Origin: Polymyxa betae A26-41 | Lineage: Eukaryota > Protista > Endomyxa: Phytomyxea | Direction: 5' to 3' | Assembly: GCA_003693705.1 (NCBI GenBank) | Contig: RBZT01000215.1 | Coordinates: 62,001 to 126,000 of the forward strand | DNA: 64,000 nt | Part shown: positions 16,972 through 37,961 of the stretch, in pieces | Layout: each line of letters starts with the position of its first letter | Numbering within the stretch: position 1 is the first letter of the stretch | Position numbers and translations under genes: made by a program | The notes under the pieces: model-generated | What the model was told of the DNA's origin: nothing | Databases searched by the model: none | The model's input: the letters and a program-made list of their open reading frames with translations, nothing else

Positions 16972-18406
16972 CTATGCACTGCTTGGCGGCGTTGCAATAG
17001 GCTTTTGAAGGTTAGCACGCTGCAATGCAGATTTAGTTTGTAAGCATCGTCTTCGAATGGAATCAAGCTCAATAGCCATCTTTATGTCATCTTGGCTCAA
17101 GGTTTAGAATGCAAACATGATGTCTGTTAACCCGCTAACCGATCCATTGCTGGTTTTCTTCAGTCGAAGAGGAAATCACAGTAATCGTTCCGACAACTGC
17201 TGAAGTCAGCTGCATGGTAATCGCTGATAAACGCTTCACCGAAAGGCCACCTATTGCAATTATTCTGTTCAAGCTTGCCGTCCGACCATCGCTGTTCATA
17301 GCCCCATATAAGATCAACTGAATCCAAATTTGCAAAGATTTGGATTGATCACACCAAAGCTTACGTCATTGCAAAGCATAAAGAGACATTGAACGACATT
17401 GTTCGTGATATTCAGTTTACGGCGCCTCATCTAAACCCATTTCAGAGGCTTCTTCTATCATGTTGCTTCGTATCAACAACCTTCATTAGCTTTCCCTGAC
17501 GAATAACATATCGTGCGCCGTTAAAGATGCAGAATCGATTGCAGAAGACGTCACGTTGAACTGCTTGTAGCAGTTGGTTACCTTTGGATTTAATTGGGGC
17601 CAGAAGCCCTTCGATTTCTGACGCTAGATTGCTGATTGCCATCGTAGCTTGCATCAAATCAGATTCGATCTCTATGCTGAAATTGTCATGCAGCCGGTAC
17701 AAACGCACCAATGTCATTAGTAATCGGGCAACTGAATTGTAATCTTAGTTTGACGCATGAAGGAGCGACATGCAATCTCACCGCGATGAACGGATGCATT
17801 CAGAAGCGATTCCAGCCGGACTTCGAACTTGCTCATGATTTCTATTACTGGAGCCATTGATTGGATCCTTCTCGCGGCTGTTAACGTCGCTTCTGTTATT
17901 CTTGCACTGAATCAATAGAAAAGCGATCTCCCAAATGATTGTTACGGTATCCGGCAGCAATGGTCTGATATAATCGGAACAGAGGCATATGCGATAAGAT
18001 CGTATTGCAAATCCGTTCAGGGTTCAGGCGCCCCTCTGCTTGCAGATCTTTAAGGCGATTGTAATACTCTGCGTTCGAAACTACGCGATGCTCCAGCTGA
18101 TTGAACACACAATTTAAATCGGCTTGGATCACAACGCCTTCCAAAGCACTCTTCATTGTTGCCTAAGAACGCTCAAGGCAATCGCTTTCCAACCAGGACT
18201 AGATTTACCAAAACTTGAAGTTTAAAGCGATGTGCACATTCGGTTTTCCAAAATTGTGCAATAATTTTTTCCATGACTTGGTCGAAGGTGATGCGATCCG
18301 GACGGTCAAGGCTCTCGTCAAGCTCCTCATCATTTACATAAATACGCTCGCATAGCAGTCGAGAAGCCACTTCGAGCGATGGCGCTGCATCAAACTCGTC
18401 GACCAT
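16972..18406 (-). CDS. Divergent DH-PH (RhoGEF-like) protein, multi-exon; start may be 18505
   Basis: DH-like IIAQFWKTE, CVFNQLE and MPLFRLY. PH-like RYVIRQGKLMK, LFMLCNDLILYG and SSTEENQQWI after splicing. Stop at 16972-16974. Confidence 0.65.
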
Positions 18407-34423: not shown

Positions 34424-34640
34424 GCATGAACGATTTCGGACCGAGATCAAGTGTCATGGTTGGTGTCATTGCGAATTTTGAAATTATTTCGATCGGCAAT
34501 AGCGGCGATTTATTCACGGCAAGTCGGCAACTATCAGATGATGGTTATGTGCCCCCATTCGGTCGATCTCTATTGTTCGCGTCATGGATTATAGGTTTGA
34601 AAATGGCACGCGACCCATATCTTTATACGTGCGATTCTTA

Positions 34641-36470
34641 ATGGCTGCACGAGACCCGGCCTCGTTGGTCGCGGCCGTCAAGCACGATGACGGCAATGGC
34701 GTTGCCCAGATCCCGTCGAATTTATCCTCAATGACTGCCGATCAGATCTGTGATTCGCTGCTTGCTAGTGAAGAAATCTATGTACAAGATTGCCTTCGAG
34801 TCCTGTCTGAACAGTTCGAAAAGCGACTGCGTTGTCACAATGCGATGAGTTGCTCAATTTTAAGCGATGTCGAGATTGAAAGCATATTCTTGAACATTAC
34901 TGGGATTTATGCGGTCAATCATCGTTTATATCGCGATCTGTTAGCAGCTCGGTTGAGTGGCAATCTGCCCGAACAATTCGGGAAAATTATGACACAAATG
35001 ATCCCCTATTTCAAACTTTATGCCAACTACATCAACAAACAGAAAACAGCGGTTCAGATGTTGAATCAGCTACGAAAGCGAAAAGGCAAATTCGACGAAT
35101 TTTTATCGATCAGCGAGAAGTGTGCGGGTAATCGGCCTGTTAACAAAATAATGGAAGGTCCCCTGTTTCGCCTTCCACAATATATTGTCTTTCTGGCAAC
35201 ATTGCTAAGGAAATTGACGGACGGTAGCGAAGCGAAAAAGGAGGTCTTGAACGCCATTCATGCAATCCACCAGGTACCCATACCCAACTTTAGAGGAATC
35301 TAGAATCCCAGCTTGAGTGAAGTTCAGGTGGCTGATCATGTCTCGAACAATCTTAGGGACGATGCGCAGAGGCGACAAGTCGTCAAATTTCAAGAAAAAT
35401 TGTTTAAAGGCGGCGTTGCCTTAGTGACACCATCTCGACTCGTTCTGAAATTCGGTGAATTGCACAAAGTGTTTCAAAAAAAGTCGCTTATGCATCAGTC
35501 CAAGCGGTACCTATTCATTCTGTTTAACGACATGCTCCTCTATGCATCCTTGAAAACGGCAGTTCAGTCAGCGAAAGTCAAACACGTCCTGCAACTAAAA
35601 GGCATGACAGTAGCTGATCTGCCCGAGAAACAAAATTTCCCTGTTCACAATGCGTTTTATGTAAATTCGCCGGTAAAAAAACTGATCCTGGTCGCTAAAT
35701 CGGCTCAAGAAAAATCTGAATGGGTGGATGCTATCAGCAAGGCGATTATCAACTGTAATACGTTGCAATCGGAACTGGTCGGGCAACCAATACCTGCTGA
35801 TGAGATTGAATTTGAAAAAATGATCTTCAAGAAGAAGTATCGAACGATTATTCAGAAAGGGAATGGATTGCGAGAACGTCGTGTGCAGAGTATGATTGAT
35901 GCCGTTGAGCTATCGGATTCAATCAGTATTCGGCCTATACCCGACATCGTTGTGATCCACGAGTCGCCTGCACATCAGGCAGTGCCAAATTCAACCTTAA
36001 TCGCGGACAATGTGCTGCTTAACAAACGATCGACTATCCCAGAAATTCCTCAGATTCAAAATAGCGATGGTGATCTACCAGAGGCGGATTCTGATGACGA
36101 TACGGTCGCCAACGATGACGCAGGCGGCAAGCCAGCGGTTCCGGATGAACTGGCGATCCCTGTAGCGCCAATTCCACCTCCAGTCGACCGTCAAGTTTCC
36201 AGTCAGAGAAGGAACTCGGCTCCTGAGCGACCACCATCCAGAAGGAGCGCCTCCGCTAGTGCGCCACCACCAAAAGCCGCTCCAATGCAGTTCCTGGACG
36301 AAATTCGAGCAGGAAAGGAATTGCGGAAAGTCGAGCCAAATGCCAACCGGTCGCGACTGTCGGAATTTGAATCCGATCTGCACGCACAGCTCCAGTTCTC
36401 GCTGGAAAGGTATAGGAAATTCGTCCAGCATGACGACGACGACCTGTCGGATTCCAGATCCTGGGATTAA
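34641..36470 (+). CDS. DH-PH RhoGEF with Pro-rich linker and C-terminal WH2-Central-Acidic (WCA) tail (2 exons; intron 35274-35327)
   Basis: DH: LLASEEIYV, IFLNI, FKLYANY, PLFRLPQY. PH: LKFGELHK, RYLFILFNDMLLY, SAQEKSEWVDAI. Tail: FLDEIRAGKELRKV...DLHAQLQFSLERYRKFV...DDDDLSDSRSWD*. Confidence 0.85.
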
Positions 36471-36499: not shown

Positions 36500-37441
36500 T
36501 TAGAGAATGCCAGGTTGACTTAGTTGCACCAAATGGATTTGTAAGCTCCGTTCAGCGCTCTCCAACAGAGTCAACGTTTTGATTAGAGTCTCGGCTTTCA
36601 GCAATCCAGAATCTTGTTCTAGAGCGATCTTCGTTAGTTCATCCAAAGCCTGAGATAATGCTGCAAAACTTCTTGCGGAATTACTCATGCTCGCCACGAT
36701 TTTTTCTAACGCTTGTCGACATGACTGTAAGGATCTCAACAGAACAACATCAGAGTCCCAGCATACGCCTGAAGCTGGTAGCTGTAGCGAAAATTTCTCT
36801 AAAGCAACGGCCAACTGCCCATTCTGTTCGCTTGCGATTTTCAGATTGGAGAGTGTCTTAGTCAAGGCTCCATGGCATCCCAGAACATCATCAACAGCTT
36901 TATACACTTGTTTCCTCTGCAATGCCAGCCGGATGTTTACAGTCGATTTCATCAATGCATCGACAGCCGAAGCGACACAACCCGCCCAATTCTCGAATCG
37001 CTGCTCTGATTTGCGGAAATTCTGTTCAAGCAAGGCACGGGTGTAGGCTGCCTGAATAATTGTGTTCGCCAACGCCTGAGCTTTGCGCATTAAATGCGAA
37101 CGAGAACTTGCTTTGTCTGAAGCTGCCAGTGTTGTAGTAGAAATAGACGATTTCAAGTCAGAAGCAGATGGACGACCTGGCGTCTTTCTTGACTTCGCAA
37201 CTGAAGGCGTTTTGGTTTTAGCAATCGATGGTGTCTTGGCCGAAGTGTGGCCGCCTTTCGATTTAGACACTGATTGCGTCTTGGACTTGGCAATAGATGA
37301 AGCCCTTGTCGTGGTTTTCGGTGTCTTTGCTAGCGATTGTCGCCTAGGCGTTTTCTCACCGGATTCAACAGGACGTTGCTTTGTTATCGATGTTAGATAA
37401 CGAGATTTCACTGTAATTTGGTCAGCTTTAACTACTTCCAT
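36500..37441 (-). CDS. Augmin subunit HAUS8/AUG8 (QWRF-family-like), intronless
   Basis: N-terminal VKSRYL, a basic S/T/K-rich region, and a helical C-domain with QLP and ERSLQIHLVQ. Confidence 0.72.
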   Translation of the reverse strand: MEVVKADQITVKSRYLTSITKQRPVESGEKTPRRQSLAKTPKTTTRASSIAKSKTQSVSKSKGGHTSAKTPSIAKTKTPSVAKSRKTPGRPSASDLKSSISTTTLAASDKASSRSHLMRKAQALANTIIQAAYTRALLEQNFRKSEQRFENWAGCVASAVDALMKSTVNIRLALQRKQVYKAVDDVLGCHGALTKTLSNLKIASEQNGQLAVALEKFSLQLPASGVCWDSDVVLLRSLQSCRQALEKIVASMSNSARSFAALSQALDELTKIALEQDSGLLKAETLIKTLTLLESAERSLQIHLVQLSQPGIL

Positions 37442-37961
37442 AGCGATGACGAACCTTTCACAACCCGACGAGACGATTTCGGCGCCGGCTGTGACGCCTT
37501 CGCTCGTCCGGGTGTTTCGAATGCCAACCGAATTGGTTGCAATGGCGCCCGGCCAACCGACATGCATGGGCTGGACATGGCTGGGCTTTGATCTTCATGA
37601 GAAGCAGCACCTTGAGCAAATGGCGTCATGTCGACTGTCATGGGCGCACATTACAGTGTAGTGGAGGCGCCCCTGTTTCAACACAATAAAACGTTGAAGA
37701 CAGATTTAGAGCCTTCAACAAGCCTATCTCTGTACATACATCCATAATTGTAATCCCATAAGCACGTAGATCCATAACACGTAATTACGTTGATTCATGG
37801 GGAGATAATTCTGGAACGGAGAAATCCAGAAGCGCCATTTTCATGAATAAGAACAGTTCTGCAGATGACGATACGACTTTTATTGCTTAAATAAATACTG
37901 CTGGTTGCACAAAGAAAAAAGATTAACTTGATAAATATGGTTGGATACATATGACGATAAA

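Follow-up and report, generated by a model that had tools for sequence, protein, structure and literature searches.

Can a single polypeptide both switch on a Rho GTPase and start branched-actin assembly? Activators of the Arp2/3 complex are normally effectors that act downstream of Rho GTPases, and the exchange factors stand upstream, on separate proteins. The question is raised by a gene at positions 34641-36470 (+ strand) of a 64,000-nucleotide stretch of the Polymyxa betae A26-41 genome (hereafter the window; assembly GCA_003693705.1, contig RBZT01000215.1, positions 62,001 to 126,000 of the forward strand). It is probably a cytoplasmic Dbl-type Rho guanine nucleotide exchange factor (RhoGEF) of ~591 amino acids with a C-terminal WASP-type tail of WH2, central and acidic regions (WCA), and the only representative that this genome has of a family conserved in Rhizaria. 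The original prediction for this locus had proposed DH and PH domains followed by a complete W-C-A tail; domain matches, conservation across relatives and profile homology all support that reading, and each of its elements occurs where it had been placed, the WH2 motif (36285-36332) to the nucleotide.

The gene is composed of two exons, derived from two adjacent same-strand open reading frames (ORFs; 34584-35303 and 35313-36470). Exon 1 (34641-35273, 211 codons) carries a short N-terminus and most of the DH (RhoGEF) domain, and exon 2 (35328-36470, 380 codons plus TAA) the end of the last DH helix, the PH domain, a disordered linker and the WCA tail. Between them lies a 54-nucleotide phase 0 intron with GT..AG borders (35274-35327), as read from the DNA: the GT at 35274 stands right after the codon CAG (35271-35273), the AG at 35326-35327 right before GTG GCT GAT, and the exon 1 frame meets a stop codon within the intron, at 35301-35303. 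The spliced junction, AIHQ followed by VADHVSNNLRDDAQRR, agrees with the uninterrupted reading of the metagenomic relatives P0002 (QEVTDHISNNLKDDAQRR, in the longer context AIQEVTDHISNNLKDDAQRR) and P0001 (QKVTDHISLTLKDDAQRN, within AIQKVTDHISLTLKDDAQRN), both of which run straight across the intron position. The predicted 54-nucleotide intron is, in this way, backed both by the DNA reading and by the comparison with relatives. Translation probably begins with the ATG at 34641; an in-frame ATG at 34584 is the alternative. The N-termini of the relatives are likewise short, with the DH domain beginning at residues 25-69, so that no extra upstream exon is needed for this gene. Exons 1 and 2 were used as separate queries in the searches below. 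The original prediction had put the tail in the same exon as the part before it, which holds for the PH domain through the WCA tail, a single uninterrupted ORF of 385 codons (35313-36470), and does not hold for the DH domain, which sits in an exon of its own upstream of the intron.

Both halves of a Dbl-type module were recognized by Pfam. The ORF 34584-35303 matched RhoGEF (PF00621) with 95.9 bits (E 4.2e-27, cut-off 27.6), and the ORF 35313-36470 matched PH (PF00169) with 44.2 bits (E 3.1e-11, cut-off 25.1) as well as SOS1_NGEF_PH with 32.4 bits. The PH domain (35454-35747, + strand) was modeled by AlphaFold2 as a beta-sandwich with a C-terminal helix, at a predicted local distance difference test score (pLDDT) of 80-97. 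The nearest solved DH domains are those of 8zlf (a protist RhoGEF), FGD6 and intersectin-1, and the conserved regions CR1 (SEEIYV) and CR3 (PLFRLPQY..LL) line up with 8zlf and FGD6. The gene thus has the marks of the Dbl family, namely a DH domain above threshold with CR1 and CR3 and a PH domain directly C-terminal to it. Besides RhoGEF, PH and a sub-threshold WH2, no further Pfam family was matched in the gene.

Downstream of the PH domain, and on the same strand, a disordered linker (35838-36263, pLDDT <50) contains an acidic patch, the short motifs APIPPPV and ASAPPPKAAP, and a basic Ser-rich stretch, RRNSAPERPPSRRSASAS. It is followed by the WH2 motif MQFLDEIRAGKELRKV (36285-36332), a short amphipathic helix and then an LRKV motif; by the amphipathic C helix DLHAQLQFSLERYRKFVQ (36375-36428), with an Arg at 36414-36416 that is invariant in the family; and by the acidic region HDDDDLSDSRSWD (36429-36467), with a penultimate Trp at 36462-36464 just ahead of the TAA stop (36468-36470). 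The AlphaFold2 model of exon 2, built with the family alignment, had a mean pLDDT of 66.6, with a confident PH domain and disorder from residue 171 to 312; a short helix was placed in the WH2 motif (QFLDEIR, 321-327) and one of 23 residues in the C region (344-366, pLDDT ~85), and the acidic end was unstructured. The modeled helices thus coincide with WH2 and C, with disorder between them. Against the Protein Data Bank (PDB), phmmer found only the WH2 repeats of N-WASP (E 6e-5). The three features of a WASP-family tail, WH2, a C helix with the conserved Arg and an acidic end with Trp, are all present, and the binding of actin and of Arp2/3 is predicted from them.

Judged from sequence, the tail on its own is only suggestive, and the comparative evidence is decisive. 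An exhaustive HMMER search with exon 2 was run against 1.84 billion representatives; the best 150 matches, taken with their cluster mates, include at least 20 divergent proteins with DH-PH that share the three-part tail in the order LLxxIxxGxxLxKV, spacer, LxxxLxxSLxRYRKFVQ, and an acidic run ending in W(D/E). Tails of these relatives are 24-47% identical to that of the window gene, and the linkers are unalignable. The Gly of the WH2 consensus LLxxIxxGxxLxKV was found in at least 90% of the tails, and the Arg of RYRKF (Arg62) and the terminal Trp are invariant in all 14 aligned ones. An Arg in the C region and a Trp in the A region are the hallmark of the Arp2/3-binding C and A regions of WASP-family proteins. 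When 10 tail-bearing relatives were examined with Pfam, RhoGEF and PH were matched in nine; WH2 passed its cut-off in P0005 from Mataza (46.7 bits, two copies) and in P0022 (24.2 bits). The Paulinella protein P0051 has PH, SH3 and B-box domains and the tail but no detectable DH domain, and P0009 has an FH1-like match. Homologous-protein searches with exon 2 and with P0002 returned few metagenomic relatives, and the same search with the full-length family alignment gave four matches, its word index probably being swamped by Pro-rich words.

A profile of the 14 tails, compared with all PDB sequences, matched N-WASP in the Arp2/3 complex (6uhc_H, 426-500; E 1e-9) and WAVE1 (3p8c_D, 208-277; E 2e-4), each alignment spanning WH2 through C to the terminal Trp. 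In the genome of P. betae itself (27,085,814 bases in 1001 contigs, to which all genome-wide searches refer), the same profile found two places only: this gene with 92 bits, and a gene on contig C592 with 39.4 bits (E 2e-8). A weak tail-like match on contig C696 (18.5 bits) was rejected, since the segment is coiled and basic and lacks both WH2 and the acidic end with Trp. Against circularity, a leave-out profile was made from 11 tails with the plasmodiophorid-like sequences excluded. It gave the window ORF 55.5 bits over residues 318-382, the only match among the 1294 ORFs of the window. Since a profile of distant relatives alone singles out this ORF, the predicted tail is more than a chance look-alike.

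The history of the family was approached through a maximum-likelihood tree of the DH-PH region of 89 proteins with the tails excluded (quick search, midpoint-rooted), in which P0002 stood in for the window gene. All 14 tail-bearing rows and this proxy fell into one clade of 24 rows with an SH-like approximate likelihood ratio test (SH-aLRT) support of 99. Among the other nine rows of the clade, P0159 has the tail, and most of the rest end in the linker or just after the PH domain and look truncated. Because the tail-bearing rows form one DH-PH clade, the fusion of DH-PH with WCA appears to have arisen once and to have been kept. Its named members are Mataza sp. D1 (Cercozoa, Thecofilosea), Paulinella chromatophora (Cercozoa) and Leptophrys vorax (Endomyxa, Vampyrellida). 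On present sequences the family is conserved and, judged by DH-PH, monophyletic; so far it has been found only in Rhizaria. The Mataza and Leptophrys entries are transcriptome-derived, so that in these organisms DH-PH and WCA are on one mRNA. In the layout of the family, DH-PH is followed by a linker, which is disordered or rich in Pro and in some members bears WW domains, and then by one or two WH2 motifs, C and A.

Two closer relatives bear out the arrangement locally. On a European Nucleotide Archive contig, one protein is called in two pieces, a DH-PH fragment (P0001) and, 135 nucleotides downstream on the same strand, a tail fragment (P0090). On the Logan contig L023, the ORF of P0129, which is open to the contig start, reads a run of 16 Pro residues and then WH2, C and A. 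The convergent gene downstream of it is homologous to the gene at 36500-37567 (− strand) of the window, with 27% identity (E 5e-9). This shared neighbor makes the locus syntenic with the window and L023 the orthologous locus. In the window, the convergent gene has its stop ~30 nucleotides from that of the RhoGEF-WCA gene, and its product is rich in Ser, Thr and Lys in the N-terminal half and helical in the C-terminal half. The contig of P0002 (L002, JGI 3300039110) ends before the tail. The gene call of P0002 stops at an unrecognized intron after KKKYNTRK, and its source name, 'signal recognition particle subunit SEC65/ribosomal protein S15P/S13E', is evidently a mis-annotation for a DH-PH protein.

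One or two WW domains stand between PH and WCA in many members of the family (P0004, P0022, P0154, P0157, P0029); Pfam found no WW match in the window gene, in comparison with P0004, P0022, P0154 and P0157, where it is present. The Pro-rich linker of the original prediction is there in the form of short motifs (IPPP, APPP), but it is modest and far weaker than in relatives, where long poly-Pro stretches such as that of L023 precede the WCA. The absence of WW from the window gene and its closest relatives, together with the much reduced Pro-rich region of the window gene, suggests that the linker has been slimmed down in the plasmodiophorid lineage.

Predicted partners of such a protein are encoded in the genome. 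ARPC2 (187 bits) and ARPC4 (232 bits) were found, along with an Arp2 scoring 600 bits to bovine Arp2 vs ~400 to actins, so that the absence of Arp2/3, on which the original prediction was to be abandoned, is contradicted. On contig C916, a GTPase exon carries the Rho-family switch I motif YVPTVFENY, and the assignment of this GTPase to the Rho type rests on that motif. The genome has at least 15 DH-domain genes, and with the tail profile the WCA was detected in this one only. The second place found by the profile, at C592:106600-107960 (L013:4687-5960) and outside the window, is the canonical WASP of the genome. It carries a GBD-like segment as well as the CRIB motif IGTPSNVVHKHHIGID, several of its exons are poly-Pro, and its WCA ends in DDSDDDDDWD before the stop; the ending in WD and stop is common to both genes. 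Two more WH2 loci exceed the Pfam cut-off, one on C977 with two WH2 motifs and one on C8 in an ORF that is rich in Pro, resembles verprolin or WASP and includes DDWED. WASH (PF11945) was unmatched in this genome and equally in control genomes, which makes the result uninformative.

There is about an even chance that Rhizaria possess an undescribed WASP-family class of nucleation-promoting factors (NPFs), in which DH-PH replaces the regulatory N-terminus and one polypeptide activates both a Rac/Cdc42-like GTPase and Arp2/3. In the likely mechanism, the membrane-bound DH-PH module would load GTP on the GTPase, the WH2 motif in the tail of the same molecule would bind an actin monomer, and Arp2/3 would be engaged by the C helix, which has the invariant Arg, together with the acidic end, which has the invariant Trp, whereby nucleation of branched actin would begin right where the GTPase is switched on. 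In parallel, the same GTPase, once loaded by the DH domain, could release the CRIB-containing WASP, bringing a second WCA to the site and giving a stronger protrusion. Activation of Arp2/3 is strongest with two WCA peptides, and a RhoGEF-WCA protein beside a freshly activated WASP would on that account be a plausible feed-forward arrangement, which is speculation at this stage.

Several observations weigh against this interpretation. The WH2 motif of this gene, taken alone, reaches only 16.9-18.2 bits with PF02205, under the Pfam cut-off of 23.1. In CR3 (PLFRLPQY) the DH domain carries a Phe in place of the Gln of most DH domains, at a position that varies in the family (F, C, N), so that nucleotide exchange cannot be taken for granted. 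With an acidic region that is short and broken up (DDDDLSDSRSWD) and little Pro upstream of it, the activity could be below that of the relatives. One part of the family ends in Phe and not in Trp, namely P0073/P0159, P0068, P0049 and P0095 (Leptophrys vorax), the endings being EFK, SDFD, DDDFD and NDFDDF. Either Phe suffices in these proteins, or selection has not acted on Arp2/3 binding in every member. Finally, the taxonomic range is based on just three named relatives, plus metagenomic ones.

The weak WH2 score and the change from terminal Trp to Phe would also suit a tail that is kept for a reason other than Arp2/3, either as an actin-monomer-binding or filament-elongating WH2 module or as an autoinhibitory C helix docking on DH-PH, the acidic-Trp end then serving another partner. 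The family-specific RYRKFVQ motif is more strictly kept than C regions usually are, as would be expected of an intramolecular contact, and in WASP the C helix itself is the autoinhibitory contact. Still, the W-C-A order at the extreme C-terminus with invariant Arg and Trp is the exact Arp2/3-binding signature, the tail profile covers the full WCA of N-WASP, of WAVE1 and of the organism's own WASP, and autoinhibition is compatible with Arp2/3 activation, since WASP does both. A function apart from Arp2/3 is accordingly judged unlikely. Far less credible is that the architecture is an artefact, with two neighboring genes taken as one or a WCA look-alike arising by chance in a low-complexity tail. 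It could be argued that gene callers divide one relative into two, P0001 and P0090. However, PH and WCA share one unbroken 385-codon ORF here, the Mataza and Leptophrys proteins are full-length single ORFs, the leave-out profile has its sole match in the window at this tail, and the family is one clade; the likelihood of an artefact is next to nil.

The original prediction had also proposed a part in host penetration and an action on host Rac/Rho. P. betae is an obligate intracellular root parasite (PMC6328671), and on that ground the protein might be a secreted or host-delivered effector that acts on plant Rho (ROP) signaling and actin during penetration of root cells. This is very improbable: the N-terminus, MAARDPASLVAAVKHDDGNG, has no hydrophobic signal-like segment, the same architecture occurs in free-living or predatory Rhizaria that are not plant parasites (Mataza, Paulinella, Leptophrys), and the parasite has Arp2/3, WASP and a Rho-type GTPase of its own. 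The proposed host link thus finds no support.

Compared with known systems, the C-terminal layout resembles that of WASP and N-WASP in the one or two WH2 motifs, the C helix with a conserved Arg and the acidic end with Trp, with short Pro motifs where those proteins have a Pro-rich region. However, the RhoGEF-WCA protein lacks the WH1 domain, basic region and CRIB/GBD of these proteins (WH1-B-GBD/CRIB-Pro-WCA) and has DH-PH instead; and while WASP is an effector of Rho GTPases, the RhoGEF-WCA protein would be their activator. Similarly to WAVE1, its WH2 motif ends in LRKVE and the full WCA aligns, but there is neither the SCAR homology domain of SCAR/WAVE proteins (SHD-Pro-WCA, residing in the WAVE regulatory complex) nor a sign of a regulatory complex. 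On the exchange-factor side, the closest parallels are the Cdc42 GEFs intersectin-1L and FGD1/FGD4 (frabin), since among solved structures the DH domain is most like those of FGD6 and intersectin-1. N-WASP is bound by intersectin, and an F-actin-binding region is present in frabin, so that a link between GEF and actin assembly is known as an arrangement of two proteins. In those systems the WCA is on a separate polypeptide, or there is filament binding only, whereas here GEF and WCA are in one chain.

The WASP family is otherwise divided by its N-terminal parts. In the survey that defined its classes, WASH, WHAMM/JMY, WAWH and WAML combine the shared WCA with a class-specific N-terminal part (PMC3298513), and WHIMP is a further class of this kind (PMC7112243). 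The P. betae gene is similar to all of these in joining a WCA to an N-terminal part of its own, but none of them has DH-PH. No N-terminal domain of a known class (WH1, SHD, WAHD, WMD etc.) is present, the N-terminal half being DH-PH with no other Pfam family in the gene, and it therefore fits none of the described WASP-family classes. The WASP-family survey, in which Bigelowiella stands for the Rhizaria, contains no mention of GEF, RhoGEF or Dbl (PMC3298513), and in the accessible part of a survey of Dbl-like RhoGEFs in 175 genomes, Plasmodiophora and Reticulomyxa among them, neither WH2 nor WASP is mentioned (PMC5499878). A full-text literature search, with most subscription journals outside its reach, found no description of DH-PH with WCA, and in the ESM Atlas there was no large cluster of DH-PH-WCA architecture, only generic RhoGEF clusters (<0.9). 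These results agree with the earlier statement that no such family had been described. On the other hand, the sequences are public and the database entry of P0005 is already labeled RhoGEF + WH2 by precomputed Pfam, so that the architecture is visible to anyone looking. The family is apparently undescribed. It would count as one more class among the NPFs that bear a WCA or, just as well, as a new subfamily of Dbl proteins, and is not categorically new.

A second DH-PH gene lies in the window at 16972-18406 (− strand), where DH-like and PH-like pieces occur in ORFs; it is not among the scored RhoGEF candidates of the genome. It had been described earlier as having no tail, and indeed the genome-wide tail profile gives no WCA near it. 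The G+C content of the window is ~46%, and that of the published draft genome is 45.1% (PMC6328671).

Overall, a natural and conserved fusion of GEF and NPF is a 'Rosetta stone' for the pathway and predicts direct functional coupling of its two ends, as a compact system for the spatial coordination of GTPase loading and nucleation. The WASP family, with its short list of members, would gain a lineage-specific class, and this in a supergroup in which the actin machinery has hardly been studied. Plasmodiophorids cannot be cultured without their host, and for these organisms the protein would offer a defined cytoskeletal component amenable to in vitro study. If the interpretation is true, Rhizaria have a lineage-specific, hard-wired GEF-to-NPF module, which may contribute to their filose, reticulose and plasmodial cell forms.

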